Below, in pieces: positions 1,531 to 29,670 of a stretch of DNA of 64,000 nucleotides (positions are counted from its first letter, which is position 1; each line of letters begins with the position of its first letter). The position numbers were made by a program, and so were the translations under genes. The notes below the pieces were generated by a model. The model did not search any database, was not told the DNA's origin, and worked only from the letters and a program-made list of their open reading frames with translations. The stretch lies in the NCBI GenBank assembly GCA_950097015.1, contig CATNEN010000001.1, positions 19,406,001 to 19,470,000 on the forward strand, written 5' to 3'. The stretch is from Macrostomum hystrix (lineage: Eukaryota > Animalia > Platyhelminthes).

Positions 1531-2461
1531 CTCTCACTCTTTCTCCCACTCCACCTCTCACTCCACCTGCGCTGACAATGAATGTAATAGATTCTAGCCT
1601 AGATTTTCCCAAAAGTGTTTTTAAATGTTTGTATAAAAACAAAACTCATCAAGCAGCTCAATCATAAATTATATTTTATATTTAAAAAATATTGACAATA
1701 ACTTGTTTTTCGTTTAAAAATGTACTTTTTTCGGAAGCTAGGCCTTTTGACATTGATAGCTTCCAGAATTTTTTCAATTCCTTCTCGTCGTGGCTCGGAG
1801 GCATGACTGCAATTTAGGGAATTAAATATTAGTCAGCTTCCTTTCTTGGTTTGATCGTCAGGGTCTTTTGTTAACCGAGAAGGAGGCCCTTCCCTGCCGC
1901 ACCAGCAAGCATATAGCCTATGCTCTTGAGAACATTTCGGAATTATGAAGTGGTGTTGATTACCCGAGACTAGTTTTTTTATAATTTACTTTGCTTATTA
2001 TGGCCAAGTGATATCACTTGTTTATTTAATTATGCTTGCTGCTGAAGAACCAAGTCGAAGCCACTATCGCATGTAAAATATTGGTTTAAAAAGAATGTCG
2101 AAAAGAACAGTGCAGGTACTTGCTACGGTGCTAGGTGCTAGGTGTGCGGGCATGTGGAAAGTAATTTATTGTTTTTTCTGTCTATTTTTCAGATGTAATG
2201 ATGCGGGAGTTTATCATGACACAATTGTATGAACAGGATAAATTGTATGTCTCATATATACAGCTTAGCCAAGACAAACGATTTGTAATTTTTTTGTGCT
2301 TTTTGTACAATTTTAAGATGCGATGGTGCCAAAAGAAATGGAGTATACATACACGCAGTTCTGTGAACGGGATAATTTTTTTATGTCCAGTAACATGTAT
2401 GTCTGTAACAAATAGCAAAAATCCTGACTAGTTGAGTTGGCAAATAACAGTTACAGGCCTG
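1531..2461. repeat. Right terminal ~930 bp of an upstream copy of the large TIR element (direct repeat of 27388-28312)
   Basis: Near-identical to 27388-28312; both end in ...GGCAAATAACAGTTACAGGCCTG. Confidence 0.9.
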
Positions 2462-3531
2462 AAACTGTTATTTGCCAACTCAGCTAGTCAGGGGACACTT
2501 GTCTTATCTGCTTCGAATTTCCATAGAATAGTGAATTTTAAGTTGCTACCTTGCCCCACCCCAGAGGCAAGTCAAGTCAAAGTCAAGGGTAAACAAAGTA
2601 ACCTATTTCTTATTTCACGCCAGACCAAACGCCCTTCAGCTTATCTCCGTCTGTTGTGGTCCCTTTTAGGCTCGTCTGAGTTGCAAGCGAATTTGGGAAG
2701 CAGAAAATCGGCGGCCGTTTTGTCAACATAGGTGGGTGGATTCTGCCTAGGGCTCAAGTTCCCACACTATTTGCTCCGTATCTCTCCTCACGTCGATAAG
2801 GGCGCAAACCTGTCCTGAACAATTTGCAAAGTTTCCTGTTTGCTAAACCCAAATCCAAGTTTAGAGTTGTGTAGAGTAGATAAGAAAATTTATGAACATG
2901 TGGCACTCGTAGAAGGGGATAAACAAGGCTAGCTTTCCTGTCCCGTTAGCGGAATGACGTAAAAAAAGTCGTCATTTTGGGCCGGTCTACTAAGAGCTTT
3001 CGGAAGCAGCCAACATTTTTGCCCTGGGCGGCCAGTTGCGATTTCGGATGTTAGGCGGTAAACTCCAATCGCAAGTGCAGGGAGTCGAAAGTATGAGGGA
3101 CAAAATAAGTAGAAATACAAAGAAGCATAGAGGGATATAGAAAAGAGAAAAGGCCCAGACATGAACGAATGGGAGAAACCAGCAGAGAGAGAGGAGCCAG
3201 GAACGAGAGGTCGAGACCGGACCGGGGATGAAAAGGAGCAAGAAATATCATGCACATTTTATGTGAAATATTGTACGTGAAAGGATGGCAAATAAATATA
3301 ATATCACGAGCGCGGAGCTACAGCTCTCTCGCTTTTTTCCCCTCTGCAGCCCGCTTGACGGAGTCGATCTCAGGCATTAACCCAAAGTGTTTTACTCATT
3401 ATCAATCATTTGATTTTTAAAGGTATCATAAGAGAACTCGAATCGTGTCAGTCCGAGTCGGTTTTTCATTCAATCTTATAAGGAGGCGATCTCTTCTTTG
3501 ATCGGCGCAGAGGAGAGGTCGTACCGCAGAA

Positions 3532-5331
3532 TTAACACCTTATATTATAGAAAGGATAGTTGTAGACATTGTCGAATTCCTGAAGCACTCTGCCACTTAT
3601 TATGCCGTCCGGTTTAACTTCATCAATATGAATGCATGTCGTCCCAACGAAGCAGCAATTGTCACCCTTCTTCGTGCTGAATTCTATAGTTGTTTCTGCT
3701 GGCTGGCTGAGGTACATATTTCGTACTTGTAGTACTTGACATACTGAATGAGCGGCGACATGCCTGGTGACTTTGACCCTTCTCTTGATTGCTCCCAGAT
3801 AGCTTTCGAATGGAAATGTACTAAAATTATTTAAGTTACCTAGCCTTCTAACAAACTGGTCGAGGTGAAGAAGTGCATGAATGTTGTAGCTAATTGATTT
3901 TTGGCCAAATATCTTTGACATCTGTTCGACGAATACCCCGATGCAGCTTTTCGCTGAATCCCATAGATTAGCATACCTTTCCGTGGAATAGCAGTATACG
4001 GCGAAGTGCAGTAGGAGAAAATTTTTGTATAACTGTTCCTTAACATATCCCTTAAAAATTATTGGTCCCAGGTAAAGAATAATTTGTCTGAACTCTGTCG
4101 CCTTAAAATAGTTAAGACACTTATCTATGCGGCGAGGTCTTCTCTGGAAATTAGACGGAGTCCAGCTGGCAATACCGGCAATGATGTCAGACAAAGACTT
4201 CATATTCCTGCGACTAAAGCGGCAGCCTCCTTCTCCAAAATACAAGTGCATTAACTTCCTTACTGCTCCCAGACAAACGGCATGTTGAAAATCCAGAGGA
4301 AAACAGTTGACGAAGTCAATGTTGGGCAGGTCCAACAGTGGTGACTTGATGACCGCTCCTGTGGCGTCTTTTTTCTGGTTGTTCTCTACTAGGGATCGGT
4401 ACGCTTCCCCACATCTATTCTGGCCAGCAGTTACGGAAAATGATACTCTGCCTTCAGCACGCAAGCCCACAGCTCGACAGTAACTGCATCCTAAGTAGCT
4501 TGTGTGACCCAGAGTGCACATTAAAAAACTGCGGGCAGGGGTGTCGCAGACAAAATAAATAGTGGAGAACATGATGCTGATTTTCTCACTGATTTTGACT
4601 GGACCAGACAGAAAGTTTTTTGCCTCTTGGCAAAACTGTTGCAGGTACTCCTGTACTGGTGGCTTTCCAGTGCCGGCCCAAACAGCCACTGGAAAAGGCT
4701 TAGCGAATGCGGATTTAATTTTCATTAGGAGTGGCCATAGACTAATCGTACTGGATCGATAGAGGGGAAGTCCGTCACTGTTTAGAAATGCGTCGAACTT
4801 GTAACACTTGGTTGAACCTTCATGCAGCAAATTTTCTGGTCGCAGTGTCAACAAATTCTTCGAAAGTAGTTGCTGCAGATTCTCCAGAATAGAAATGTAA
4901 CGAAAGTGCCCGTCTCCCATGGCCACCAAGTCACCAGTAGGACAGTTTTCTCTGGCCAGGCGTTCAAATGTTTTGTAAGATTTTGTGACAGGCAAACCAA
5001 TGTCGCGTAAACCCGCAAGTAGGAAAGCCATGGCGTCACGGGGAATGTTGTATGTAGAAAAGAACAAAACAAGGAGTGCCTGTAGCCTTACCTCCAAGGG
5101 CCGATTGTCTTCATCCTCTTCGCTGTCCATGTCGTCATCGCTTTGAGTTTCCTGCTCAAACTCGTCGAATTCTACCCTACTAAAATCTTCTTCCGTCTCC
5201 ATTTCCACATCGCCTTGACTTGCCGACTGCCCTCCAACCTGGACACTTCTGGGCCCCTCAGCTTCTTCTCTGAACATGGCCAACAAACTCTTGTTTGTCA
5301 GTCTCCTAATATTCCTAGACGCAGAGGACAT
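3532..5331 (-). CDS. EnSpm/CACTA-superfamily transposase (animal type, intronless)
   Basis: Motifs NSDGLPLYRSS..SLWP, FVCDTPARSFL, H..Y.GCSYC, PLDFQHAVCLG, FKATEFRQIILYLGP, SYNIHALLHL, FSTFPFESYLG. Confidence 0.85.
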   Translation of the reverse strand: MSSASRNIRRLTNKSLLAMFREEAEGPRSVQVGGQSASQGDVEMETEEDFSRVEFDEFEQETQSDDDMDSEEDEDNRPLEVRLQALLVLFFSTYNIPRDAMAFLLAGLRDIGLPVTKSYKTFERLARENCPTGDLVAMGDGHFRYISILENLQQLLSKNLLTLRPENLLHEGSTKCYKFDAFLNSDGLPLYRSSTISLWPLLMKIKSAFAKPFPVAVWAGTGKPPVQEYLQQFCQEAKNFLSGPVKISEKISIMFSTIYFVCDTPARSFLMCTLGHTSYLGCSYCRAVGLRAEGRVSFSVTAGQNRCGEAYRSLVENNQKKDATGAVIKSPLLDLPNIDFVNCFPLDFQHAVCLGAVRKLMHLYFGEGGCRFSRRNMKSLSDIIAGIASWTPSNFQRRPRRIDKCLNYFKATEFRQIILYLGPIIFKGYVKEQLYKNFLLLHFAVYCYSTERYANLWDSAKSCIGVFVEQMSKIFGQKSISYNIHALLHLDQFVRRLGNLNNFSTFPFESYLGAIKRRVKVTRHVAAHSVCQVLQVRNMYLSQPAETTIEFSTKKGDNCCFVGTTCIHIDEVKPDGIISGRVLQEFDNVYNYPFYNIRC

Positions 5332-6499
5332 GCTGTAAATGTTTACTACTGTCTGTACGTCTGTAGTAATTAATATGTAATAGTAAAAGTATGTAATAGT
5401 GTAATATTTGTCAACTCTTAGTCGTAGTTTTAGTCGTGCTCTTAGTCTTGCAACGCACTTTCAATAGCTACACTACAAAGATCCTCCAAAACAAACTGAC
5501 TCCACTCTCCATAGTCGGCACCAATGGCACAATCGGTAGCTAGCGGATAGTGGGTTTACAGGATTTTTCATAACTAACCAATGAGCGCGCGACGAGCCTT
5601 CCCACTGTCTAGGCCGTGCAGTTTGATCTGACATAAGTAAAGCTTTAGCTTATCTTCGCTCCCCTAACCTCCTGTCGTTCTCAAATTTTCTCAAATCTCA
5701 ATTCTCAAATATTCTGCAGACATGAAGTTTTTAGTCGTATTTGAAGCCGACAGGCAGGTTATTGAAGCTAATGAGAGTGATGTAGGTGAATGTGAGTTAA
5801 AAAATCGGACAGTTTCTGAATTGTCACTGTTAAAGGACAGTGAAGAGAGGTGGCGCTGCACGGCCAAATATGCAGGCAGAGTCTACGCAGCTGAAGTCCT
5901 CCAGGTGAGATCTAATGCACATTTTTGCTTTTTTTACGATATATGCCGCATATATATGTCAGTGACAGGTGGAGTGTATGGCAGAGTGAGAGGTGGAGTG
6001 AAAGGTAGTGAGACGTGGAGTGAGAGGTAGTGCGAGGTGGAGTGAGAGGTGGAGTGAGGTGGAGTGAGAAAAATGTCTGTCAGTTAAGTCAGTTTGTCTG
6101 ACAATTTGGTTCAATTCTTTCTCTACAAGATCTTTTCTAAAAATGACCAATTTAGGTATACCTGGATGACTCTCTGGAGCCGCCCAGCCTACGCTTCGTC
6201 CGCAACATGATCGAAAAAAGACGGTCAATTGTCGATATAATTCGGCAATTGAAACCGAGGGTTCTCTGCGCTGAAGATATGCGGCAGGCGCGACGCAAGT
6301 TTCAGTGTGGTGTAAGTTACAATCTGTTTGTCTGTCCACTCTATATCTCTCTCTCTCACGCACACACATTTAGATATCTCAGTACAATTAATCACCTCAG
6401 TAAATTATCAGTCAACATCATCAATTATCAATCACTAACAACGATTGTCCATCAAAAATATATTATCGAATGTTTATCAACATTTTCGATAATCAATTA

Positions 6500-6912
6500 C
6501 TGTTATCCAATGTCAATCATCCGAATCGATAATCAATCACTGTTATTCAATGTCAATCATCCGAATCGATAATCAATCACTGTTATTCAATGTCAATCAT
6601 TCGAATCGATAATCAATCACTGTTATCCAATGTCAATCATCCGAATCGATAATCAATCACTGTTATCCAATGTCAATCATCCGAATCGATAATCAATCAC
6701 TGTTATCCAATGTCAATCATCCGAATCGATAATCAATCACTGTTATCCAATGTCAATCATCCGAATCGATAATCAATCACTGTTATTCAATGTCAATCAT
6801 TCGAATCGATAATCAATCACTGTTATTCAATGTCAATCATTCGAATCGATAATCAATCACTATTATTCAATGTCAATCATTCGAATCGATAATCAATCAC
6901 TGTTATCCAATG
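6500..6912. repeat. 40-bp intronic tandem repeat (~10 copies)
   Basis: Unit AATCAATCACTGTTAT[C/T]CAATGTCAATCAT[C/T]CGAATCGAT. Confidence 0.95.
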
Positions 6913-7134
6913 CTAGTAACCCCAACATTTTCCTCACTTACTTATCCCCTAACTTATCCGACCTAACAGAACATCTCGACTGGTTCTGCGTCCGACACGG
7001 ACGATTTTTTCGTCTGTCCGGAGGAGCAAGCGGAATCCGAAGCGCAGCTACTAAAGCTGCCCTGCGTAGACGTGCCGCTGACTTTAGCAAAACTGGTGCC
7101 ACTGCCATCAACGATTCCGAAGTCTGCGGCCACA

Positions 7135-7372
7135 GAAGCTGCAAAAGCCGCGGCAGCTAAGGCGGCAGCTGCAAAAGCAGCAGCTGCGGCAGCAGCGGCA
7201 GCAGCGGAAGCAGCAGCGGCAGCAGCGGCAGCAGAAGCAGCAGCGGAAGCAGAGGCAGCAGCTGAAGCAGAGGCAGCAGCGGAAGCAGAGGCAGCAGCGG
7301 AAGCAGAGGCAGCAGCGGAAGCAGAGGCAGCAGCGGAAGCAGAGGCAGCAGCTGAAGCAGAGGCAGATGCAG
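7135..7372 (+). repeat. Coding GCA-rich/18-bp repeat encoding poly-Ala and (AAAEAE)n
   Basis: GCAGCAGCGGAAGCAGAG units inside exon 3 of the accessory gene. Confidence 0.9.
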
Positions 7373-9274
7373 AGGATACCGGACTGACATCAGCAGGTTT
7401 CCGAAGCTTCCAGGGCATCTCCATCGGACGACTGGAGCAGCAAATACAGTCGGGGGTGGATTTCCCATTAGAAAGCAATCGCGGCATTCTCTACGTCGCC
7501 CTGTTCGCAGTACGCGAGAGTACCCGATTGTTCAAGAAGATGGAAGCAACACAGCAGAAACTAGCCACCGAGCTGGCCTCTGTTAAGGAGGAAGTGCAGC
7601 AACTGCGCCTGTCATTAACGAAGGACCAGCAACCAGTGCAACAGCTCCAATTCTGGCCCATCGACTCCTGGCAGAGGTATGTCCACTACGCGGAGAACAC
7701 GCCTGCAGAGTGGACGTACCAGTTGAAACAAGCCCTGCCCAACAGAAAAATGGCGACTGTCGGAGCCACCATCCGGGTGGTTGGACACCTGCTTGACACC
7801 TGAGATGCAGACGAAGGTGAATTATAGCGGTGCAGGCCTACGCCAGAAATGCATCCAGGACGGTGTCGAAACGCAGTTTTCCGACGCATGCCTTGGCTTC
7901 AAGGCCGTTTTATTGCGACACGTCCAAGGTACGAAATGTTCAGGAATCTGATTGGTACTTTCACATTTCCTATCCGACAAACTTTACCTGTACTTCTCAA
8001 TTTACCTACCTCTCACTCTACCTCTAATCTAGATGCCGCCACCAGCATCTACGGCACGACAACCGAACAACAATTGACCGCCACGTACGTCGGTAGCCGA
8101 TTATGCGACATGCTCCATCGAGGCAAGGACCGTCAAACGAGCAGACCGCATCGACGCCTGTCAGCCTCTGGTGCATCAGGAGCATCTGCCACACCTTCGC
8201 CAGCCGGCGCTAAGAGACCTGGCTCGCAGCTGCTCAGCCATGCCTCGCGAAAAAGGCATTCTTTGCAGCCGCATCACAGTCGAGCAGAGCTGCTGGAGTG
8301 CTCCGATGAGGACGCTGATGGCCTGATGAGCGAGATGACTGAGGAGGATTAAACTCGGTAGAGATCCGACCGAGTTCTCCTATATGACAAGGCTTCCGGC
8401 GGAACAGGAAAGATAAGTGGCTTTTAAATATCTTTACTGCCTACTACGAGTACAAGTACTAGGAATTTGCACTGCTTATTTCTGCAACTCTTGCTCGTCG
8501 TATAGTCGATGAAAAACACAAAAAATTACTATCTACATGCCTACACGTCGTCTTTATACCCGGAAATCTTGTTCGTGCCTGCAACTCTTGCTCATCGCAT
8601 CCTGTAATCAAAAACACTAAAATTCGCTATTTACATGCCTGCAGCTCTTACTTAAGTCTGCAACTCAATTGCTTATCGTATCTAATAATTGAACAAACAC
8701 ACAAAAAATTATTTGTACATTCTACTATTAGCAGTACAAAAAGCACAGTGAATTTTTTTATTTAGAACTAAGTTTACAGAAGCACTAGTTTTTTTGCATG
8801 AATTACATAATGAATATTTCTTTCCAGTTCTACCATGGTGCCGGACGTCTACCAGTTGCGGGACCTGGTTGACTTGCTATAAAAGATAAGTAGCGTTTAA
8901 AATTTAAGTTTTTTATGGTTAATCTTATGCTCGATCTTGTACTTCATCTCATTCTGAATCTCATGTCTGATCTTATTCTAATATTTCCGCTTATTAAGAA
9001 TCTTTGCTTCATCTCGTTTACAATCTCAAATGTCGTGTACCTCATTCCATATACATCTGGATTCTATCTCACTGGATCTCTATTATCTGCATTGCTGTAC
9101 AGTGTATGTAAACAAGTAATTTTACAGTAAACCTTGCACACACAAATAAATCGTGGATACTTTCCAATTTCTCCAGAAAACCAGTCAGCCGGTTACGGGA
9201 CGACATGGTCGACTGGCGGAGGTGGCGTGGCACGGACGACTCGCAGAGGTGGCACAACGAGGACGACTGACTGG

Positions 9275-9724
9275 CGCGCAGTGCAGGGCTTGACAGGGAG
9301 GATTGGCAGAGCTGGCATGGCAGGGACAAAATGTGGACTAATTTTCGTGCTTTGTATTTACTTAAACCGTACTGTCTTCGCTTGATGATACTGTAAAACA
9401 TTCTTTACTCTTCTTTTCAATCATGGCTTGCATATTCGCTTTGAAATTGATAATAAATTTGTACCTTTAGCTGCGTCAGTAAGAATTTAATTATAACATT
9501 ATAATTATAAGATTAACAAAATCGCGCAGTGCAGGGCTTGACAGGGAGGATTGGCAGAGCTGGCATGGCAGGGACAAAATGTGGACTAATTTTTGTACTT
9601 TGAATCACTTATACCGTACTGTCTTTGCTTGATGATACTGTAAAGCATTCTTTACTTTTCTTTTCAATCATGGCTTGCATATTCGCTTTGAAATTGATAA
9701 TAAATTTGTACCTTTAGCAGCGTC
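9275..9724. repeat. ~200-bp direct duplication (9275-9480 / 9524-9724)
   Basis: GCGCAGTGCAGGGCTTGACAGGGAGG...GTACCTTTAGC occurs twice. Confidence 0.9.
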
Positions 9725-10224
9725 AAAAGTATTTAATGAGACTAGAATGAACATATTCGTAAACCATTTATAGCGGTGACGAATAGAAAAATTACATGAG
9801 CATGTTCAATTTTATTTATTTAAAGTGACTTTAAATTCAAAGTAAAGCTTTATATATACGGCATGCATACAAAAAATGAAACATACGTATGAAAAGTACA
9901 TGGTCAGGAGGGAGGGGGCAGCGTGGCGAGCGGAGCTGCTGGGGCAGGAGCGGAGCTGCTGGGGCAGTAGCGGAGCGGCGTACAGAGGGGGCGTATAGTA
10001 ATGTCCCACCGGGTAGAAGTGTAAGGTACGAATTACTATGGTAGTTAGAACTACAAGTGGAGTATAACAAAATATATGAATAATAATATTAACTATACAA
10101 TAAAGTAGGGCGGAAAATTACAAGAGCAGCACTGTAGAGAATGCGGAGTCATTATTTATTTAGAAAACTGCGATTTATAAAAACTGTTGTTTATCTGCGT
10201 CCCATTACTTTCATGATACAGTGC

Positions 10225-10400
10225 AGGATGGGCTGTGACCCACTGATGATACAGTGATGGGCTGTGACCCACTGATGATACAGTGATAGGCTGTGACCCA
10301 CTGATGATACAGTGATGGGCTGTGACCCACTGATGAGACATTGATGGGCTGTGACCCACTGATGAGACAGTGATAGGCTGTGACCCACTGATGACCCACA
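10225..10400. repeat. 29-bp tandem repeat (~6 copies)
   Basis: Unit GGGCTGTGACCCACTGATGATACAGTGAT. Confidence 0.95.
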
Positions 10401-10469
10401 GTAGCGGAGCTGCTGGGTAGGAGCGGACCTTTTAAAAAGCTAGGCTTTTTACGGCGCTCAAAAATACTG

Positions 10470-12688
10470 CACAGCCTACTAACAGTAGACTTTGAGGATA
10501 TGCGCCGAATTTTATTTACACTGCACCCCCACCCCCCTTCCACCTACCCTGCGCCCCGCGCCCGGCGGGGCGCTGTCGCGGGCGCACGGACATTCTATAC
10601 TCCCGGGCGCTGTGCGCCCGGCGGGAGGCGCAGGGTGGGGCGTACAGAGGGGGCGTATAGTAATGTCCCACCGGGTGGTTTCTTGAATTTTCCTAAACGG
10701 CAATAGGTGCCCACAAGCTCCAGTTCAAGTTTATAAATCTGGCTACAATAGTAATTAAGTATAGTCTTTGTAGTGCGAAAATCATGTAGTTGAGGCCAAG
10801 CGTGGCACCAATTGTTGGTTTCTTGAATTTTCCTAAACGGCAATAGGTGCCCACAAGCTCCAGTTCAAGTTTGTAAATCTGGCTACAATAGTAATTAAGT
10901 ATAGTCTTTGTAGTGCGAAAATCATGTAGTTGAGGTCAAGCGTGGCACCAATTGTTGGTTTGTTGAATTTTCCTAAACGGCAATAGGTGCCCACAAGCTC
11001 CAGTTCAAGTTTATAAATCTGGCTACAATAGTAATTAAGTATAGTCTTTTCTTTGTTGCTTTTTTAGCAGCGTGTATGATAATATAGATTAGGCATTATT
11101 ACTCTAAAGATGTTTGTTTGATCGAAAAAAACCAGATAATAAGCCAGTGATTTACTATTTTGACGTATAAAACTTCATTCTTTGTTGCTTTTTTAGCTGC
11201 GTGTTTGATAATATAGATTAGGCATTATTACTCTAAAGATGTTTGTTTGATCGAAAAAAACCAGATAATAAGCCAGTGATTTACTATTTTGACGTATAAA
11301 ACTTCATTCTTTGTTGCTTTTTTAGCTGCGTGTTTGATAATATAGATTAGGCATTATTACTCTAAAGATGTTTGTTTGATCGAAAAAAACCAGATAATAA
11401 GCCAGTGATTTACTATTTTGACGCATGAAACTTCATTCTTTGTTGCTTTTTTAGCTGCGTGTTTGATAATATAGATTAGGCATTATTACTCTAAAGATGT
11501 TTGTTTGATCGAAAAAAACCAGATAATAAGCCAGTGATTTACTATTTTGACGTATAAAACTTCATTCTTTGTTGCTTTTTTAGCTGGTTAAAAACTTTCC
11601 TGGTTAAAAAAATCGAGTAGAAATCATTTAAATCACTAAAGTATCACTAAAGAATTTTCAAACCTACTGGTGATTTGAAAACTGATCGAATCCTATCCAA
11701 TCGAATCAGTCTTGATAGTACGAGAGTCTAATTGGCCACCTACTCAAGATTAATTAAAACTTGAGTGGCACAGCAAGATATTAATTTTCGTAAAAAACTT
11801 TTTTATATCAACTTTCGCCTCGAGACCATTAAACGCAGCCTCGGACATTCAAACCACAGAATGTGAATGAAACGGCGTTTATTATTTACGTAAAATGCTT
11901 AATGGACCGTATTTTTGCTATATAAAGTGTTACAGTATCAGTCATAAAGTGACATCATTATAACTTTTCAATTGTCATGCATTCTCTTGCATTTTAGTTC
12001 TTGTGCTTTTCCTCGCTTTGTAAACTGAGAAAGGGGTGCTTTATTGTTCTTGTAAATGAAAGAAACATTTTTTTCAACACTTTTTTTTTAGTTTTTTTAA
12101 AATACGATTCTAGGAAAGTGTTAAAATCGTGGAAACGCCCGTGTATCAAGCTCCTATAAAGTGCATTAAGCTCCTATAAAGATCTTCTACTAAGTGTACA
12201 AACCTCCTGAGGTGGTGTATACAGCACCTAATAACCGTATACGGCTCCTATAAAGCTCCTATGCTGGTCGCGGTCGGCGACAACGTGGCCCAAAGGGTTC
12301 ATCTACTGGGCACGGTGAGTACAGGTCATGCCCACTGTGTGGGGCGACTGACCTGCGCTCTGATAACCTGCGCACTCACCTTATCGCGGTCCATCGCGAG
12401 GCCCACCCGATTCGCCGATCTGCGATCGCAGGTCTGGCAGCGCTTGAAGCGCGCATAGCAAAAAATGCGCGCCCCGGTGGGACACCGGCGGGTTGGGCGC
12501 TAGCGCCCCTCTGTACGCCCCGCTATGCGCCCTCCCACCGGTGACCGGCGGGGGGGCGTATAGTTTGGCCAAGCGCCCCGCCGGCGGGGCGTATAGCCAA
12601 ACCGGTGGGATCCCGCCGGTGGGAGGTGGGTGAGAAGGGTAAATTAAATTCGGGGCATATCCTCAAAGTCTACTGTTAGTAGGCTGCG
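10470..12688. mobile_element. Non-autonomous CACTA-like TIR element with 3-bp TSD (CTG)
   Basis: Left end CACAGCCTACTAACAGTAGACTTTGAGGATATGC is inverse to right end GCATATCCTCAAAGTCTACTGTTAGTAGGCTGCG. CTG at 10467-10469 and 12689-12691. GC-rich subterminal repeats (GGGGGCGTATAG, CCCACCGG). Confidence 0.8.
10677..11586. repeat. Tandem arrays inside the CACTA-like element: 140 bp x ~2.7, then 129 bp x ~4
   Basis: Unit starts at 10677/10817/10957 and at 11051/11180/11309/11438/11567. Confidence 0.9.
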
Positions 12689-12706
12689 CTGTATTTTTTT
12701 AACTTT

Positions 12707-18578: not shown

Positions 18579-21000
18579 GAAACACTGTTTAGGAGCCCCT
18601 CCATTTATTTGACAGACAATGAAACTGTGAGCTATATAATAATAATAAAGCGGAATTGAACGGAAAAGCTGATAAATGAACGAATTTAATAGTGTCATAA
18701 GTCCCACGAATAAAAACAGCTAACGTAAGTACACTGCCAGTCCGCTGGATAGTGCAAACATGCACGGTAAGATTGGCAGCGCACGGTAATTAGCAGATTT
18801 TATTCGCGCTCAACGAGTCCGCCGCGAGAAGGCTGACACATGGGCTCATTAAATTAGCGCTTTAAAATGTAGCGCTTCACAGCACATTGAATTGCATGTG
18901 CAAAGTGACCTGTAAAAATTTTGCTAGTTGAAAGAAATGTGTCCAAACTTTGGGCTTACTGGTATTAATTTTAGCGCTCTTAAACTTAACGCTTCACAGC
19001 AACCACACAAAAGTAGGTGCAGAGTGACCTGCTGTAATGTTTTATGCGACAAGTTTTGAAGAAATTTGTCTGACACATGTGCAACAAATTCAAAATGATT
19101 AGCAGTGACTTGTTGGTACAATTTTTTGAACTTTTAAGATTGCAGCCAGGGAAACCTCTTTAGACACTCTTCGTCAGTTTCAGAATAATCGAAGAGCAAT
19201 TCTTACCCTTCTAGAATGTCCCGAATAGCAAAAAAAGCGATCCTGCAGACGTTCCGTCCGATTTCTTTACATGGTGGTATCGCCCTTGGCATTAGATTTG
19301 GAGTCAACCGACTGTGATTAATAAACCGACCAAGGGAAAAACTATCAGTAGCATCTTCGCAAAGCGATTAAGAGCCATAAAAAAAGAAAAACGCAAAACA
19401 AGGTGACTCGCCTTTAGATGCCCTCTCCTGCTCTCTGGCGAGTCCTTGTTTTCTAGATATTACGGTGCCACCATAGAAGCACACGAATGAATCAGCTCTA
19501 ATTAGTTCACCAGCAAAAATACCGAGACCCTTCTCACCAGAAGGCTTCACGAAAACCTTGGCTGGGACGAAATTTGAACTTTTCCTGTAGACATCTATGC
19601 ATGATCGTTGGCCAGCAGAAGATTCGCAGCGCCTGTGGGAAGTGTTGACAAGTCTTAGAAAATACAGATGGCACAGGCAGTTTGCATTTTACGTAACTAA
19701 GCTTTAAATGAGATCGTGACATGCCCTTCACAAATTAATTACCTTTGTTCTTCCAGCTTTCCAACACAGTCGCCATCTGAGGACGGATACTTTGGCAACG
19801 GCTGATTGGAAGTAAACCACCAGAATATTTGACCAAAACGTTTAACACCACGCTTTCGCGCGAGTCGCATGGCTGGTTGACCTGTCAGCAAAGTGTTAAG
19901 TCGCCGGAATTCGATGGTGTGAATCAGCTTATAGTGCTGCCGCAAATGTACATAGAATGTATCGCATAGCTGGCACAATTTTGCATCGGCCTTCTTCGAC
20001 CAACGTAGATATTGAACGATGCATTCCGTCTTCCCTTTCGCGTTTGGATGATGCGTTTCAATATGCAGAGCGAGCCTGTCAGGTCTGGCCGAATAGGCAG
20101 ATAAACCAGGAAGACATAACGGACAATCGAGCTTATCAGTGGGCATGCTGTCTTTTGAATTTCAAATCTGAATTTTTATTTTTTAAATAGTTTATTTAAG
20201 TTGCCTGCGTTTCGCTGAAATCGGTGACGTATATAGGCGCAAGTATGTAAATGCTAAAAAAGGAAAACATGTTTATCAAGCACGGCAAGCAATGAAAAAA
20301 ATAAGAACGAGAAACACTGTTTAGGAGCCCCTCCATTTATTTGACAGACAATGAAACTGTGAGCTATATAATAATAATAAAACGGAATTGAACGGAAAAG
20401 CTGATAAATGAACGAATTTAATAGTGTCATTAGTCCCACGAATAAAAACAGCTAACGTAATTACACTGCCAGTCCGCTGGATAGTGCAAACATGCACGGT
20501 AAGATTGGCAGCGCACGGTAATTAGCAGATTTTATTCGCGCTCAACGAGTCCGCCGCGAGAAGGCTGACACATGGGCTCATGAAATTAGCGCTTTAAAAT
20601 GTAGCGCTTCACAGCACATTGAATTGCATGTGCAAAGTGAACTGTAAATATTTTGCTAGTTGAAAGAAATATGTGTCCAAACTTTGGGCTTACTGGTATT
20701 AATTTTAGCGCTCTTAAACTTAACGCTTCACAGCACATTGTATTGCATGTGCAAAGTGACCTGCAAAAAATTTGCTAGTTGAAAGAAATATGTGTCCAAA
20801 TTTTGGGCTTACTGGTATTAATTTTAGCGCTCTTAAACTTAACGCTTCACAGCACATTGTATTGCATGTGCAAAGTGACCTGCAAAAAATTTGCTAGTTG
20901 AAAGAAATATGTGTCCAAATTTTGGGCTTACTGGTATTAATTTTAGCGCTCTTAAACTTAACGCTTCACAGCACCCACACAAAAGTAGGTGCAGAGTGAC
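18579..21000. repeat. Direct repeats (18579-19028 and 20311-21000) flanking the ZnF-SET gene; second copy has an internally triplicated ~120-bp unit
   Basis: GAAACACTGTTTAGGAGCCCCT...GGTGCAGAGTGAC near-identical in both copies. Confidence 0.9.
19134..20146 (-). pseudogene. Zinc-finger + PR-Set7/SETD8-like SET methyltransferase gene (exons 20146-19743, 19632-19134) with two in-frame TAA stops
   Basis: Exon 1 has CPLC..HIETHH and CQLC..HYKLIH; phase-2 intron; exon 2 reads KGLGIFA..FVCFYGG..RE..CFAFFFFYGS*SLCEDAT..LGRFINHS..PNL..FFAIRDILEG*ELLFDY..FPWLQS*. Stops at 19368-19370 and 19203-19205. Confidence 0.8.
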
Positions 21001-21072
21001 TTTACAAGGCAGCGCTTGACTTCAATTAAAAACACAAGTAACGGTGGAATCATTAGTACACTGGTTGGATAC

Positions 21073-23520
21073 TTAATCGGAGTCGCTATCAGAAGACCCC
21101 GAATCTTCTGAAGCAACCGGTTCATTACCGCTCTGACTCAGTGTGCTTAGGGAGAACTTATTCGCAAGAAGATATTTTACAGAATCAGTCACGCTTTTAC
21201 TTGCAACATCTTCAAGCAGTCTTCTAAACAATTCCCGAAATTGAGCGGCTAAGCCCGGCTGATTCGCTAAGTCATCACAGAGGCTCTGCAAATTAACCTG
21301 AAGGTCAACCCACTCATCTGAAATAATATGTGCTTCTTCTTTTAGGCGTTTATATTTGTTACTGACGTCTATAGCCCGCTGACGAAATCGGATGGAAAGG
21401 TCGGTTGCAGACAAATGTTCATATTTTGCACTACGCGGTTTTTTATATTCATCGAAAGAAGCTCTGTCTTCAATTGGAAGACGAGCGTAGAGTTTTTTCA
21501 TGTCGGATGCATAACTTTTAACCTTTCGCAAGCACATTCTAGTTTGACTTTGGCCAACTGACTTACCAACCTGTTTACTCCAATGATCTCTGTGCACTGC
21601 AAGAGCGCGTAGCTCACATAGGATATCATCTTCCGAGTTGTGTACAGCTACTCGGAGGGAATCTTCATACCATTGGGAGCCTAAATCCAAAATTTCATCC
21701 TCAGAGATGACCAGACTGTCATTTAGGACCCCCGAGTGCTGCAAAATCGCAGACTGGCTTTGTAGCTCTTTTAGTTCACTTAGAATGCTTTTTCCCGCAC
21801 CTACCATAAGCTTAATACGTTGTGTAAACCACCCAGAAGCGCTAAGAAGCTGTTGTGCATTAAAGAAGTATAGAATATGCGCCATGAATTGTGCTCGTCG
21901 GTCTTTTCGCATGTACTTTAAAAAGTTACTGAACGGCCTGAGTTGAGACCAGGCTCGCTCAGTATTCTCTCCATCGCATAGACCTGCGCCTGGAGTAACG
22001 CGAACAGAAAACTTTTTTTGACAACTGGGCAGGTGACCAAGAGCATGAAAAGCGTTTATTGCACAGCTACTCGCTTGAATGTTGGCACCAGACTTCGCAA
22101 TAGCGGACGTAACCCGGCTAGATACGCGACAGCCTGTGAATTGGGATAAAGAGTAAGTCATGTTGTCATATAACTGTACACAAGCAACAGTATTTCATAG
22201 ATTGTATGCATTTTATAAAATAATAATAAACTTACCCACGTCATATACGACAAGTAATTCCTTAGACACTTTGACGTTTCGCAGAAAGTGTTCAAGGCAC
22301 TGTTCCAGGTAGCAAAACTTTTCTCCACCAGTTGTGATATTTGAGCCACACAAAAGGCGATTGTGACGACAGAATAATCCAAAGAAACCCGTGACATCAT
22401 GTCTCTGCTCACGGCTTAATGGTTCATGAGCACCGGCCTTCCAATTAGGACAATTCTGTTCCTCTGCTCGATTTTTTGGCACATCCGCTTTAATATCTAC
22501 ATAGACAAGCGGCGTAGGTAATGGACGACCATCTGATGGTATTTCCAGTTGTGTACGCCCCCTGGCTTTAAAGCGCTGCCAACCAAATAGAGCATCTGCA
22601 CAGACAACAGTTTTGCGCACAGCGTGATTATCTGGACAGAGAAGACAATTATTTGGCCATTTTGCTGAGGCCATTTTCAGGTGGCGAAACCGCAGCAAAA
22701 CATCATGTAGTTGAATGCGTTGATAAGTGCTTTTTACAAGAGCCAAATTATATGTACCTTGTCCCAGAGTTGGCCCAATGAGCAGTGTACTGACCGCTCT
22801 GTGAACAGGCAACTGCCCAGTCATACACAAACTGTCTAGCAGGGACAAAAAGGTAAAAGAAAAGAATGCATACCCATCTGAATCAGGCTTTGACCCTTCG
22901 CAACAAGGGAAGAACCCTTGGGAAAGGAGTGCACCAATAAGATCACAGGAGTCGCAGGTAATAAAAATGACCTTTACGCTTCCAGCCAGATCTATAAGGT
23001 CAACTTTTGTAGCCGCACAGACATTCAGATTCAATTTACTAGAAGCGCAGCAAAACATTTCAAAAGCATCGTGAGTAGCATCCAGTTCCTGAAACATTAC
23101 ACACTCCTTATTCCATATGAGAAACTTGTGGGCTGAAAACTTTTTATGCGTCTCATTCTTACAGCTGGCACATAAGCTAAGTCGACAAGTAACACATCGA
23201 TATACACCTTCGTGCTCATAGCAAGAGGAACACAGATTTAAGAGAAAATGCTTCTCGTAACTACCTCTGTATTTCTCAGCAAAGCTGTCAAAATCTACCC
23301 ATTCAACATCTTCTACTGTAGGAGCAAAAGACTCAGGCATACCGACATCATTCTCGGTGCTAGCTTCCACTGGAACAGGAGTAGTTTCAGACACAGGACG
23401 CCGAGATGTTGAGCCTCGATTTCGGCCGCTAATGATTGTCTTAATCTTTCTGGGTCGCCCACGACAGCCAGTTTGCAGTGTAGCTTTGACAACACGCTTC
23501 AGTTCGATGCCGCGATACAT
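21073..23520 (-). CDS. KDZ (Kyakuja-Dileera-Zisupton) transposase with CxC domain; exons 23520-22236 and 22133-21073, ~781 aa, open
   Basis: CSSC..YRCVTC..CASC..H..H cysteine cluster, GFFP, CLLCP..VCADALF, TGFFGLFCRH, GEKFCY, YDVG|C across a phase-1 intron, FHALGH..CQ, GAGLCDGENTERAWS. Confidence 0.88.
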
Positions 23521-26184
23521 TGTCTGGAAATGAGAAAGTAATTTATAAGCATTGCTCCAGTATTTAATATTGTAGACAGACAACTGTTTTCTATTTAATA
23601 CTATAAAGTTTTATATATTCTACAATGAAATCATAGCACTTATATTCAACATATATTCCCACAAGTATTGTGGCCATGTAACTACAGTCTGTGGAGATTG
23701 CTGACCTGCACTTAGGCATCATTTCTATACACTTGCTTGAATATAAAGAATTGAACATATACTTAAAAATTTGCACACAAATCCCTTTTTCTCACTCTCA
23801 CAAATTAACACATTACTGCCACCCATGGACTCCATGGAATGTGACAAAGATTGGCAGACTTGGGGTGGCAGTTTGCTCAGCTTTGCCAGGGCCAGACTGT
23901 CATGCTGCAGTGTCCAGCTGCAGCTATTCTGCCAGACACACTGCAGTGTCCAGCTGCAGTTGTTCTGCCTAGATGATCAGCCTGTCTGATACTGATACCA
24001 GCATGGACTTCTCTAATCCTCCAATGGATTGCCACTAATCTCAGTCTAATACCCTCTCAAGTGATTGATTTCAAGATTTCAAGATTTCAATTTCACGATT
24101 TACGATTGATAGATATAAATATTGATCTCAAGTTCAAGGTCCACTGGAAAGAAGCCTTTATGTGCAAAGAGTATGCATTAGTTTTTTTTGAGATCTTGCC
24201 CTATTAACTATTTACTTTATTTACTATTTACCAAAGCCTACTTGACTCAATGTTAAAGTTACTTATATTGGTGGTGCATGTCACATATTACATTGTTTAT
24301 AATTTCTTTCTGGCACACAGAGCCACCTTTCTGACTCTGGAAGTAGGCTAGGAGGCTAGGTCTAAAGACCAAATGAAATTAGTGACTGTGTTGCTTCATA
24401 AAAAGTTGCAGAGCTTGGTACACTGTTAAGCAAGAAATGCAAAGAAACTAGCAGCAGAACTTAATAAATAAAAGTGAATATTATAGTCGGACAACTGTTT
24501 CTAATTTAATACACACTGGCACAACCTCTAACAAAATTTTGGATTAACCTATCTTCAATGTAAACTAAATATGAGTAAATGCTTATAGGCACTAACTATA
24601 GTACTGGTTTACTGCCGAGTTAACTAGTTTCTAACCTGCCAAAGATAGTCAGATAATATTTCCTATTCAATACTAGGCCTAGCTATCTAGAGTGTTATAT
24701 TACATCATATTAACCATGTAATTTTGCCATATAGCGACATATGTTATTTTCCAACTGACATTGTTTAGACATTTATCGAGTTTTTAATTACCTGCAGGCG
24801 CAGCTAAAACTTGTGCAAATGACTCTGATTTGTCCAAAACTAAGTGAAGAGTGAAGTAAACAATACAAATATTTTCTTTTTAACCTTAATTACGATTTAC
24901 GAAGAACGAAATTAGCTACCAAAGTGGCAATAATCTAGAAAAAGTAACAGTAATGTTGAATGATTGCAATTGGTAAAATCTTGTACTTTTTTGTCCCGAT
25001 TTACCTGTCTTTCACTTTCAGTTGAGCTGAAAGAGAAAATTAAATTACTTAATTAATTAAAATTCAGTTCAAAATTAAAATTTTAAAAAGCTAAAAACAA
25101 CATGGCGGACAACTCCGACGAACATGCATCTGAAATTATTAAAACCGCGCCAAAAAAATCTGCAGAGCCTTCTTTATGTATATGTTTAAGAACTTTATTA
25201 TTTGTTTTTTTCAAAGCAGTATTAAGTAGCCTATACCTTTATTACGATTTTGTTTTTTTTTAACTCGAATGTTACGAGTACGTTACGGTTTACATACGTA
25301 AGTTGCGGGTAATATCGAGACGATCTTCAAGAAAGGAAAATAATGTGTTTCGTAGCTAATTATTTGGAATACCTTGGTTTTTCGAGAATTATTAAATTAA
25401 GACCTAATATACCAGAAAGTCTCACGGTTTCCCTACTTTGTAGCAGAACACGAAAGCTCAGACACTTTTATTAAAAATATATATAATATTTGTAGATGAA
25501 TTAACTAAATCGATGTTTCAGTAGGTTGAACTCGTGCGATTATACTGCTTTTGCGACAGAATGCAATGACTTTGCATTAATTAGATTTATAAATTGGTCG
25601 ATTATTTATCATGTTGATTTCTGTTTAAAAGGTTAAATGTTCCGGAAACTTTATGTAACTCTAAACAAAGTAAAACATTTAGATACTAGTGTGAGGAATA
25701 GTAAGGCATTGCACTTCGTACCCTACAAAATTTAAACGCTGTTTTGCTGTTTTTATGCAGTATGTGTTAAAAAAATTCTTTTAGCGAACTATTTTCGCTT
25801 CAACCTTTCTTTTAAGTTACTTTTATGCTTTAAAAATAATTAATGATTTAATGATTTTTGCCTTGCTGGTCTTTATTTACAACTTTATGGATTACATGTA
25901 ATGACAAAAATAAGTAGAATGTTTGGTGCAACGATAAATCGATGACTTTCGTTACGGGTGCTAATAATTTAGACTTTTGCTGATTTGTAATATTGACGTT
26001 CACCCTTTTGGTTTTTGAAGCTTTGCAGATAAAATTTGGGGACCTGCTGGACCCGATCGTTAGAAAATGGAGCGATTCGCTAGCTTGCGATATATTTGCT
26101 TGCGTTGCTAATATTGCGTTGCGAATTTGATCGCTACGATGACCATTGCTTAAAATAAGTAAGCACAAGCTGCAGCCTGCAGCC

Positions 26185-26808
26185 AAAAAAGTATTCGAAC
26201 GAAAGAATATACTAATAAATAGTAATTCTTCGTTGGATATGGGCAATGTTATGTGGTGAAACTGGTAGCACGTCTGCCTGACAAATGCGGGTCGTTGGTT
26301 CGACTCATTTTTTATTTAAATTAATGATTATATGTTTTGCAGAACAACAAGAACATCATATAAGCCTATTCATTTCTTAATCTGGCTGAGTAAGAAAAAA
26401 AGCGGTTTTACGCTGATTTACATAAATATCAGCACTATACAGTACACTCGAAGCACCAAAGGATAGCCTATATGTTTTGGAAAACTCTGAAAAAGTATTC
26501 GAACGAAAGAATATACTATTAAATAGTAATTCTTCGTTGTATATGGGCAATGTCATGTGGTGAAACTGGTAGCACGTCTGCCTGACAAATGCGGGTCGTT
26601 GGTTCGACTCATTTTTTATTTAAATTAATGATTATATGTTTTGCAGAACAACAAGAACATCATATAAGCCTACTCATTTCTTAATCCGGCTGAGTAAGAA
26701 AAAAAGCGGTTTTACGCTGATTTACATAAATATCAGCACTATACAGTACACTCGAAGCACCAAAGGAATCACATACAGTAGGATAGCCTATATGTTTTGG
26801 AAAACTCC
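26185..26808 (+). repeat. ~305-bp tandem duplication, each copy containing a degenerate tRNA-like Pol III cassette
   Basis: TGGTGAAACTGG (box A-like)...GGTTCGACTC (box B) followed by a T run at about 26254-26314 and 26558-26617. Confidence 0.6.
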
Positions 26809-26929
26809 TAAATTAAGAAAACTCTTAAAGAATTCATTTTCCAAACATATCGGCAGCATCCGAACCCCACAGAATTGCCGCACAGAACTGCTTTATTCCA
26901 CGCCAGCCGGAATTATTATTACCCGACGA

Positions 26930-27082
26930 AATGTCGGTACTCATCTGCAGCTGAGTAGACTGTGTGCACATCAGGGCAAAGCAGCTTGCCAAGGGCTGCA
27001 CGAATAGTTCTAGACTAGGTCGGGAGTCGAACCCAGGACCATCTGATCCAGAGTCCGACACCTTACTGACTGAGCTATCCGC
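26930..27082 (-). mobile_element. tRNA-derived SINE
   Basis: Minus strand GGCGGATAGCTCAGTCAGTAAGG (box A)...GGTTCGACTCCCG (box B), followed by GCCCTTGGCAAGCTGCTTT...CTACTCAGCTGCAGATGAGTACC, resembling a conserved SINE central domain; no acceptor stem. Confidence 0.75.
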
Positions 27083-29670
27083 CCTCATGGGCAACCTCTC
27101 CCCCTCCTCCTTTCCCCCATGAGCTGGGATTCCCCCCATTCCCCCCATGGCCCATGAGCTGCGATCGGCTAGCCCAGCTCACCTCACCATGAGGGCACCC
27201 TGGCTAGGCGCACGATAAACGCATGAGCTGAGGCCGGCTAGCCCGCGGCCATAGACTGCACACAATGCAGAACAGGCACACAGAAGGTAGGAGCGAAGCT
27301 ATCCCACTCCACCTCTCACTCTTTCTCCCACTCCACCTCTCACTCTTTCTCTCACTCCACCTCTCACTCCACCCTTCACTCCACCTCTCACTCTTTCTCC
27401 CACTCCACCTCTCACTCCACCTGCGCTGACAATGAATGTAATAGATTCTAGCCTAGATTTTCCCAAAAGTGTTTTTAAATGTTTTTATAAAAACAAAACT
27501 CATCAAGCAGCTCAATCATAAATTATCTTTTATATTTAAAAAATATAGGCAATAACTCATTTTTCGTTTAAAAATGTACTTTTTTTCGGAAGCTAGGCCT
27601 TTTGACATTGATAGCTTCCAGACTTTTTTCAATTCCTTCTCGTCGTGGCTCGGAGGCATGACTGCAATTTAGGGAATTAAATATTAGTCAGCTTCCTTTC
27701 TTGGTTTGATCGTCAGGGTCTTTTGTTAACCGAGAAGGAGGCCCTTCCCTGCCGCAGCAGCAAGCATATAGCCTATGCTCTTGAGAACATTTCGGAATTA
27801 TGAAGTGGTGTTGATTACCCGAGACTAGTTTTTTATAATTTCCTTTGCTTATTATGGCCAAGTGATATCACTTGTTTATTTAATTATGCTTGCTGCTGAA
27901 GAACCAAGTCGAAGCCACTATCGCATGTAAAATATTGGTTTAAAAAGAATGTCGAAAAGAACAGTGCAGGTACTTGCTACGGTGCTAGGTGCTAGGTGTG
28001 CGGGCATGTGGAAAGTAATTTATTGTTTTTTGTCTATTTTTCAGATGTAATGATGCGGGAGTTTATCATGACACAATTGTATGAACAGGATAAATTGTAT
28101 GTCTCATATATACAGCTTAGCCAAGACAAACGATTTGTAATTTTTTTGTGCTTTTTGTACAATTTTAAGATGCGATGATGCCAAAAGAAATGGAGTATAC
28201 ATACACCCAGTTCTGTGAACGGGATAATTTTTTATGTCCAGTAAAATGTATGTCTGTAACAAATAGCAAAAATCCTGACTAGTTGAGTTGGCAAATAACA
28301 GTTACAGGCCTGTAAATTTAAATTCACCGCGCATAAAATTTAAGAAGTTATAATGAAGTGAGGAGAAGAAATTTACTATAAATACACGAGCAGAATCAGG
28401 GAGAAAAAGAACGTTTTGTCTGCACATACGTTCTGATAAAGAAAGCTTGAATCTTTAAGTGTTTGTGTTAAAGAGTTATTTGAAAGAGACATTGCGAAAG
28501 AAAAGTAACCAGAGTGGAGAATAGCTGTAACTCTAGATCCACTGGAAAGCCCTATGAAGCAAACTGAAGATTGAATTGAAGACTGAATGAAAGACTGAAT
28601 TAAAGACTGAATTAAAGACTGAATTAAAGATTGAATTTAAGACTGAAATTGAAGAGAAATTGAAGAGTGATAAAAACAGATAAAGACGAATAAAGACTGA
28701 TATAGAAAAAGTTATAAGTAGGGTAAAGCATCATCAACCGAACAAGAATGTAGTGCTTTTGAAAACTTAACTAGCAATAACTTTTTTATCTTACTAGCTG
28801 TAAAATTCAAACTTTTTTAAAGTTGTGTAAAACAATTTTTTCTTTCAGAAAAACATAAAACCCATATTTTCAAGCAAATACAACTCGAAAAAAATAAATT
28901 TTAGTGCTCGATCCGAACGAAGATTCTGTGGGATCTTTAAACCGAACGAGGGATTTGACTTCCGAACGGCACGTTTCTACTGGTATTACAAGCAGCAGGG
29001 TGAACATTTGCGCAAATCTTTATTACATCATGTTCAGGTACTCTAAATGCATCAGTTAAGTGTAGATTTATTTACTTTTGGCGTCTGAGTTTTGCAATTC
29101 TCAACTTCTTTTTCAGGCGTCCATTTTGCTTATCAAATTTAATAAATGAAGCATTTATGCGTTCGACAGCATTTCTTTGTGCTACAGTTCCAAACTTCTT
29201 TGCCAAATAGTTTGTGCTGCATGTGAATACTTCAATGCAAGGCTAAAATATCATTTATGCGTTGATTGATGCGCCTACTAAACAATAAAGCGCCATAAAC
29301 TTTATTTACCAAAAATTCCGAACGCCAGAATTTGACATCCGAACAGAAGATTTTCAGTTCAAATACATTTTTTTCCTTCGATAAACTATACAGGTCATCG
29401 TGTAATTGTGTTATCTTGGTACTTGTAATCTCTTGGCGCAAGATTCAGCTTTAAAATCACTAATCACTGCGCATTTCCGTTTGCAACTTAATAAGATTCA
29501 CTCAAAATATAAAAACAATTCTGTAAAAATATTTCTTAAAAAAGAAACAGATGATCGTTCAAGCTTACTTAAAGTAGGGCATCCAGCATCGTTCCAAACT
29601 CAAATTTGATTAAAATAAACAAAACGAAAGGAGTCGAAACTAGAGGGATGAGAGATCACGGTAAGTTTGC

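Follow-up and report, generated by a model that had tools for sequence, protein, structure and literature searches.

KDZ (Kyakuja-Dileera-Zisupton) elements are transposons of which the Zisupton and Dileera groups produce 8-bp target-site duplications. EnSpm/CMC elements are recognised by a transposase of the Tnp2/Transposase_21 type, CACTA/CAC termini and target-site duplications of 2-3 bp. The WRPW motif, found at the C-terminus of Hes/Hairy-E(spl) repressors, binds Groucho/TLE. Kyakuja elements have 5'-CA..TG-3' ends, no terminal inverted repeats (TIRs) and a 7-bp target-site duplication, and fungal members carry TET/JBP genes (PMC12730594). The same paper cites SET-carrying transposons from oomycetes, the HarbingerS and MuDR families. 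For flatworms, a literature search brought up no report of KDZ or SET-carrying transposons.

The window analysed here is a stretch of 64,000 nucleotides on contig C1 of the flatworm Macrostomum hystrix. The preliminary description had presented its interval 2454-28312 as a single 26-kb element bounded by TIRs. We conclude instead that the interval very probably consists of nested pieces of three separate insertions, which belong to two DNA-transposon families and lie in a repeat-rich region of the contig. The first family (element 1) is a multicopy EnSpm/CMC-like TIR transposon carrying a Hes-WRPW cargo gene. The second is a KDZ (Kyakuja-like) transposon in which a zinc-finger (ZnF) gene, a zinc-finger-SET (ZnF-SET) gene and the transposase move together. 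The analysis shows where the families begin and end, how many copies there are, that these are collinear and that the KDZ genes are transcribed; the features concerned are these.

387-1600: minisatellite with a 12-nt unit, element-1 copy 1 (TRF 387-988; repeats to about 1562)
1371-2458, plus strand: 'A' region of element-1 copy 1, to the palindrome centre (95-99% collinear with C33, C38 and several C1 loci)
2423-2492: 70-bp palindrome internal to element 1 (self-inverted, 94%); its right arm is the claimed 'left TIR'
2459-10674, plus strand: 'B' region of element-1 copy 1, to the right terminus (copy A collinear to 10675 at 98-99%)
3535-5331, minus strand: EnSpm/CMC-like transposase ORF of element 1, 599 aa (from homology and Atlas neighbours)
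10460-10674, minus strand: right TIR of element-1 copy 1 (...TGTCCCACCGGG at 10674; inverted match to 12506-12698)
10675-11586: tandem arrays of 140-bp and 129-bp units (TRF; the 140-bp unit is that of the array found inside KDZ elements)
11587-12472: flank of element-1 copy 2, piecewise common with the paralogous locus C1:18.70 Mb (96-100% matches ending exactly at 12472)
12473-16281, plus strand: left 3.8 kb of element-1 copy 2, with TIR (12473-12705), 190-bp repeats, 25-nt repeats and Hes; broken at 16281
14503-14871, minus strand: Hes-like bHLH-WRPW gene, intronless, 122 aa, element-1 cargo (PF00010, E 2.2e-10)
16287-27258, minus strand: KDZ transposon, right 11 kb, without the family's left part (KDZ-linked matches start at 16287-16289)
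17769-18333, minus strand: zinc-finger-only gene of the KDZ element (RNA contigs, ORF; spliced leader at 18333)
18999-20215, minus strand: ZnF-SET gene of the KDZ element, intron 19632-19741 (spliced contigs, spliced-leader loose end)
21073-23520, minus strand: KDZ transposase CDS, 781 aa, open across a 102-nt GT..AG intron at 22133-22234 (transcript 20973-23524; spliced-leader loose end)
27302-28315, plus strand: element 1 (probably from copy 2), minisatellite and 'A' region as far as the palindrome centre; the final 40 bp form the claimed 'right TIR'
28316-28720: unrelated dispersed repeat, LTR-like (copies paired 2.5-8 kb apart), cutting off the 'A' copy; at least 35 copies start at 28317

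Element 1 runs from CCCGGTGGGACA to TGTCCCACCGGG, with subterminal tandem repeats, and contains the Hes gene, some 2 kb in from the left end, a variable minisatellite, an internal palindrome and the 599-aa transposase-like gene. The minisatellite array ranges from 0.05 to 13 kb between copies, the long arrays being in copies B and C. The left terminus is fixed at 12473, where the similarity of four to five other copies begins, each continuing into the Hes segment, and the right terminus ...TGTCCCACCGGG recurs with five different flanks. Both termini have different neighbours in the window from those in copies A, B, C and L006. At C1:18.70 Mb the flank ending at 12472 is followed by the same element, unbroken through A, palindrome and B to the right TIR; at other loci the Hes segment lies 4-10 kb upstream of A. 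Both ends were seen in one copy only, on C38, where the flanks are TTT and TTC and the duplication is ambiguous between TT and TTT/TTC. The window holds the right part of copy 1 to 10674, the left part of copy 2 with Hes (12473-16281), and a piece (27302-28315) that probably belongs to copy 2. No left end of copy 1 was found within 20 kb upstream, and a 457-bp indel in its B region (3095-3551) is common only to locus L009.

The 599-aa ORF had no direct Pfam hit; its Atlas neighbours carry PF02992 and DUF1258, and it has 295 animal homologues (the best from M. lignano, 74%), some with PF13960 or PF16064; those with PF13960 are annotated as 'transposase domain-containing' proteins. The TIRs of about 200 bp, the 190-bp repeat arrays at both ends, the many internally deleted derivatives and the captured host-type gene are as in EnSpm/CMC elements. 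In contrast, the termini are CCCGGTGGGACA rather than CACTA/CAC, and the captured gene is an intact bHLH-WRPW gene in 16 copies.

The first point at issue is the pair of 39-bp stretches (2454-2492 and 28274-28312) that had been taken as the TIRs of one element. They are indeed inverted copies (CAGGCCTG... arms; 42 bp at 95% identity, BLAST E 1e-13), and the homology is real, yet a single element does not begin and end with them. The left stretch is the right arm of the copy-1 palindrome; the right stretch is that palindrome's left arm, probably as it stands in copy 2, where it closes a 965-bp direct repeat of 1501-2464 (27355-28315, 97.4%; 27302-28315 also matches copies B and C). The palindrome lies between A and B in eight young and four older copies, so that in 12 other genomic copies the sequence continues through the left arm beyond its outermost base. 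At three loci there is a variant palindrome with longer arms and a deleted centre. No target-site duplication surrounds the arms, whose flanks are AACAGTTA and TAAATTTA.

A single 26-kb transposon with 39-bp TIRs at 2454 and 28312, carrying KDZ, EnSpm-like, SET, ZnF and Hes genes together, would account for the inverted match and for the common orientation of the enclosed genes. All the genes named in the preliminary description are present and on the minus strand: the KDZ transposase, two zinc-finger ORFs, the SET gene, the bHLH-WRPW gene and the 599-aa EnSpm-like ORF. We nevertheless find this reading scarcely credible, given that the arms are internal elsewhere, that there is no duplication and that the interval spans two true element-1 termini (10674 and 12473) as well as a KDZ terminus (27258). 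Among the genomic copies compared, no other locus has the same gene content between such ends. The KDZ copies on C26, C25 and C7 lack Hes, and of the 13 or more other Hes segments not one passes into KDZ sequence at 16281, so the proposed joint travel of Hes, SET and KDZ is not borne out. The open 599-aa ORF beside the left arm is the EnSpm-like gene and not KDZ; the KDZ gene lies at 21073-23520. The matching 'ends' are not those of one element because the interval is a patchwork of two EnSpm-like copies and a truncated KDZ transposon.

The palindrome could also be read as two abutted true ends. Element 1 would then form head-to-tail tandems with the unit B...right part...left part...Hes...A, and 2454-28312 would be one such unit with a nested KDZ element. 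The palindrome is symmetric about CAGG/CCTG, the second A copy in the window stops exactly at its centre, as a true end might, and copy A has a right end directly against a degenerate left end. Against this, the variable flanks belong to the CCCGGTGGGACA termini and not to the palindrome, the isolated C38 copy has those termini at its two ends and the palindrome within, and the variant palindromes look like decay of a long internal palindrome. We therefore regard abutted ends as very improbable, and treat the palindrome as internal to element 1.

The KDZ family has a fixed right end, at which at least 22 copies on six contigs stop (27258-27259), with a different flank on C26. The ZnF, ZnF-SET and transposase genes are collinear at 96-99% identity in at least ten copies, on C1, C5, C7, C25 and C26. 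In the C26, C25 and C7 copies the element goes on to the left for over 2.3 kb, in sequence that the window lacks, and the C26 copy has 3.5 kb of the 140-bp array beside the equivalent of 16287. Spliced genes were searched as proteins exon by exon, and the joined KDZ and ZnF-SET proteins were translated as a check of frame. PF18758 was found on both exons of the transposase, at 36.7 bits (exon 1) and 58.5 bits (exon 2) against a cut-off of 26.6, whilst the N-terminal CxC cluster matched PF18802 below the cut-off (E 0.031) and a B-box-like zinc finger was likewise weak. No inverted counterpart of the rightmost 150 bp turned up in the window or the flanks on C26, and when the ends of the C26 copy were compared with each other, only chance matches appeared.

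In having a KDZ transposase domain, a right end in ...TG, no detectable TIR and a large, multigene structure with a chromatin-related enzyme gene beside the transposase, this family resembles the TET/JBP-carrying Kyakuja elements of fungi (PMC12730594). It differs from them in its animal host, in its cargo (a zinc-finger-SET methyltransferase-like gene and a zinc-finger gene, not TET/JBP), in the spliced-leader trans-splicing of its genes and, for the window copy, in being truncated with a broken SET gene. With the oomycete HarbingerS and MuDR families, as cited in that paper, it would share the carriage of a predicted SET-domain lysine methyltransferase gene by a DNA transposon. The flatworm element belongs to another transposase superfamily and another host kingdom, and its SET domain forms one protein with zinc fingers and is accompanied by a second zinc-finger gene.

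RNA assemblies contain spliced and spliced-leader trans-spliced transcripts of all three KDZ-element genes, and the letters at their loose ends match the M. lignano spliced leader as given in PMC8629364. The SET gene reported earlier is present, with pieces matching PF00856 positions 1-37 and 51-97 and PDB 4ldg, but it is not intact in the window, where translation meets in-frame nonsense codons at 19368-19370 and 19203-19205. At both stops the transcripts read C where the window has T, and those from other copies are open there. By the standard of SET8/PR-Set7-like lysine methyltransferases, the window copy lacks an uninterrupted frame for a full SET domain.

The right 11 kb of the KDZ element (16287-27258) appears to be lodged within the second copy of element 1. 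The left segment of that copy (12473-16281) is 95.8% identical to the upstream copy, and at least 13 copies of the segment end at 16281. In the order of events that we infer, a KDZ element would have inserted into copy 2 of element 1, and a later deletion would have removed roughly 2.4 kb of copy 2 together with the left part of the KDZ element. No copy compared contains a match to the 43 bp at 27259-27301, so that it is likely, as a reconstruction, that copy 2 runs on beyond the KDZ piece. Part of this arrangement might alternatively be an artefact of assembly, with near-identical repeats misjoined in a repeat-rich region. The copies are 97-99% identical, and the junctions 16281/16287, 27258/27259 and 28315/28316 are unique in the genome, as misjoining might give. 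However, the sequence to the left of copy 2 is found again at C1:18.70 Mb, every junction coincides with a family terminus or a defined break, and the assembly is long-read and, by its authors' report, of high quality (PMC10468722). We consider an artefact improbable, and retain the reading of a KDZ piece nested in copy 2.

The Hes-like gene has 16 open copies, all on contig C1, with amino acid identities of 94-100%, whilst the nearest non-repeat paralogues in the genome are 33-46% identical. Its Hes-like basic region and C-terminal WRPW are those of Hes/Hairy-E(spl) proteins. It is unlike them in its length of 122 aa, in the lack of an Orange domain (no Pfam hit for it in the ORF), in having Gln in place of the Hes-specific Pro in the basic region, and in being intronless, multicopy and transposon-borne. 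WRPW is present in the window copy; one of the four copies compared reads WRPR.

It is possible, though doubtful, that this gene may be a selected accessory gene of the EnSpm/CMC-like transposon and not passive cargo. The 16 young open copies would be consistent with this, as would the older copies, of which four of seven are open and in which amino acid identity (81-84%) exceeds that of the surrounding DNA (78-79%). Purifying selection among the young copies was considered and rejected: most of the substitutions are nonsynonymous and WRPW is gone from one copy, so no constraint is evident. Nor did the ends of element 1 contain any Hes-type site (E-box, class C or N-box; 0 observed against 0.3-2.8 expected), and there is therefore no support for Hes binding to the element's own ends.

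The locus illustrates that matching inverted repeats 26 kb apart do not prove one giant element. A tempting but wrong annotation is corrected, and each regulator gene is now assigned to the transposon that carries it. The idea of regulator genes on animal DNA transposons holds, with the genes divided between two families instead of gathered in one: ZnF, ZnF-SET and KDZ are collinear and transcribed, and in several copies of the EnSpm-like element Hes lies a short way in from the left terminus. M. hystrix does have cargo-carrying transposons, but the single 26-kb element is not among them. What the cargo genes may do is something that we infer. If the cargo does act for the elements, there would be two independent animal cases of DNA transposons with transcription or chromatin regulators, one an EnSpm-like element that carries a Hes-type repressor and the other a KDZ element that carries a zinc-finger-SET enzyme, the latter an animal counterpart to the fungal KDZ elements with TET/JBP. 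If Hes is selected, an animal transposon would bring its own Groucho-recruiting repressor, beside a KDZ element with a zinc-finger-SET enzyme. As both families are young and multicopy, and at least the KDZ genes are transcribed, a genus of laboratory flatworms offers a way of putting the question to experiment.

The preliminary description of this region placed a single ~26-kb transposon at 2454-28312, with 39-bp terminal inverted repeats (TIRs, here 'arms') at both ends. The two arms are truly related, being inverted and 95% identical over 42 bp; that they form the ends of one element is ruled out by their sequence context. The right arm closes a 965-bp direct repeat, forming its final 40 bp (27355-28315 corresponds to 1501-2464, 97.4%), and the left arm forms the second half of a 70-bp local palindrome at 2423-2492. 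The sequence 2100-2464 adjoins 2465-3094, with the order kept, in at least 10 other genomic places (95-99% identity). If the regions left and right of the palindrome are called 'A' and 'B', unbroken A-palindrome-B is present, among the copies compared, in eight young (L001-L007) and four older ones (L009, L011-L013). At three loci there is a variant palindrome with longer arms and its centre deleted, which looks like the appearance expected from decay of a long internal palindrome. No target-site duplication was found around the arms when their flanks in the window were checked. The 26-kb single-element finding, as first stated, is not supported.

The palindrome belongs to element 1, an EnSpm/CMC-like transposon family, for which the window plus 20 kb upstream was compared with copies on contigs C1, C33 and C38. 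The unit shared by these copies extends from far left of the window up to 10674-10675, and the true termini of the element are CCCGGTGGGACA... (left) and ...TGTCCCACCGGG (right). Five different flanks follow one and the same right end (at window 10674 and in copies A, B, C and L006), and the left end is seen at window 12473 as well as in copy C. Similarity starts exactly at 12473 in 4-5 further genomic copies, one of them a diverged copy on C12, each followed 1-5 kb downstream by the segment carrying the Hes-like gene, in the same orientation. Both ends are present in the C38 copy, whose 15.75 kb include the palindrome. TIRs of ~200 bp and 190-bp subterminal repeats characterise the family, as does a 12-nt minisatellite whose length varies widely; deletion derivatives are numerous. 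A second copy of the right terminus (...TGTCCCACCGG) lies at window 10012, 660 bp inside the real end, and copy A has it too; a 457-bp stretch at 3095-3551 is shared with the copy at C1:19.51 Mb (99%) and missing from other young copies. The resulting layout is as follows.

Layout of the mosaic
...-10674, element 1 copy 1
10675-11586, arrays of 140-bp and 129-bp units
11587-12472, flank, recurring piecewise at C1:18.70 Mb and ending there at the same base
12473-16281, element 1 copy 2, left part with Hes
16287-27258, right part of the KDZ element
27259-27301, 43 bp, unplaced
27302-28315, minisatellite and 'A', to the palindrome centre
From 28316, a different repeat, at least 35 copies

Open reading frames of element 1
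3535-5331, minus strand, 599-aa ORF, transposase-like
14503-14871, minus strand, Hes-like ORF of 122 aa, bHLH (PF00010, E 2e-10), ending in WRPW

The 599-aa ORF had no Pfam match. Its 295 homologues, headed by an M. lignano protein (74% identity), include many animal 'transposase domain-containing' proteins, some with PF13960 or PF16064, and the nearest ESM Atlas clusters carry PF02992 Transposase_21. Because of these homologues and clusters we call the ORF EnSpm/CMC-like by function. Element 1 itself, whose termini are not CACTA, is a candidate and not a proven member of that group.

The second family, the KDZ element, carries ZnF, ZnF-SET and KDZ transposase genes. When a query spanning 27258 was searched, at least 22 copies ended at 27258-27259 and none ran on, and the flank of the C26 copy diverges from that of the window after ...GACTGC. 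No inverted partner of the right terminal 150 bp was found in the sequences compared, in agreement with Kyakuja elements, which have CA..TG ends, no TIRs and a 7-bp target-site duplication (PMC12730594). On the left, KDZ-linked similarity begins at 16287-16289. Directly before the equivalent of 16287, the C26 copy has 3.5 kb of tandem 140-bp units (window 10676-11049), and the C26, C25 and C7 copies extend more than 2.3 kb further, with 100% mutual identity, in sequence missing from the window. The copy in the window has thus lost its left part. Nested in its right part (26850-27085) is a 235-bp unit with at least 20 copies on many contigs (98-99%), which suggests a young repeat of SINE or MITE type.

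Element 1 continues without interruption at C1:18.70 Mb, through A-palindrome-B as far as the right TIR. In the simplest history, with the order of steps as we infer it, the KDZ element would have landed in element 1 copy 2, a deletion would then have taken the KDZ left part and ~2.4 kb of copy 2, and another repeat would later have broken the palindrome centre. The repeat at 28317-28720, of which the window holds a single copy that cuts the palindrome at its centre, occurs elsewhere (at least 35 copies) with many copies paired on one strand at spacings of 2.5-8 kb, an arrangement expected of LTRs. Further right, a 526-bp inverted pair (29677-30202 and 42121-42646, 98% identity) encloses 11.9 kb and may bound another large element, and 59008-62000 is a long satellite of 16-bp period with strong G and A skew.

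Hes had been described as joint cargo with KDZ; it belongs to element 1 instead. At least 13 copies of the Hes segment (14420-16281; 94-98%) all cease matching at 16281, where the KDZ sequence of the window begins. At other loci 4-10 kb separate the segment from the 'A' region downstream of it, and only 2 of the 16 open Hes copies in the genome are within 10 kb of a KDZ gene. These observations make Hes cargo of element 1. The 122-aa ORF lacks an Orange domain, and its Hes-type basic region, as we read the sequence, has Gln where Hes proteins have Pro. All 16 open copies (94-100% amino-acid identity) are on C1, whilst identity to the closest other bHLH genes is just 33-46%. Four compared copies show few differences, mostly nonsynonymous, and one of the four reads WRPR. 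There are also about seven older copies (81-89%; four of seven still open), and their protein identity of 81-84%, against 78-79% for the surrounding DNA, hints at constraint on Hes in active lineages. Two partial copies (L010:8813-8941, upstream of the window, and L004:1317-1445, at C1:17.82 Mb) keep the last 43 codons, including WRPW, in a duplicated element 1 block. Like the open Hes copies, most element 1 and KDZ copies are on C1, many at 14-23 Mb; local hopping may explain this, or a chromosome region rich in repeats.

The claim that regulator genes travel with KDZ holds for ZnF and ZnF-SET, though not for Hes: at least 10 copies on C1, C5, C7, C25 and C26 are collinear with window 17700-23700 (96-99% identity), and the three genes of this stretch are transcribed. 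RNA contigs came from two runs of the same organism and one labelled as another organism.

Transcripts of the KDZ element
17769-18333, ZnF, from RNA contigs
18999-19631 joined to 19742-20215, ZnF-SET, 110-nt GT..AG intron
20973-22132 joined to 22235-23524, KDZ, 102-nt intron

For each transcript, at least one run shows a loose 5' end carrying spliced-leader sequence; on the gene strand these ends read ...GCGAAGACTCAATTTATTGCAT, which corresponds to the 3' portion of the 35-nt Macrostomum lignano spliced leader (PMC8629364). Protein searches for ZnF-SET and KDZ were run exon by exon. The joined KDZ exons translate to an open protein of 781 aa, both exons matching PF18758, and the SET pieces align in order with both PF00856 and PDB 4ldg. 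The ZnF-SET frame in the window has two stops (19368-19370 and 19203-19205), both C-to-T at the first codon position. The transcripts read C, so the window copy is broken and the expressed copies are open at both codons. The run with the other label (X7, which comes from the study that also produced the genome runs) contains the same spliced KDZ contig over window 17701-23700, with the variant letters of the organism's own runs; this might stem from a close relative, carry-over or a mix-up of labels.

Fungal KDZ elements with TET/JBP cargo and oomycete transposons with SET genes are known (PMC12730594), and our literature search found no paper on flatworm KDZ elements with cargo or on SET-bearing flatworm transposons. 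What remains once the 26-kb element falls is a variant on known cargo-carrying transposons.
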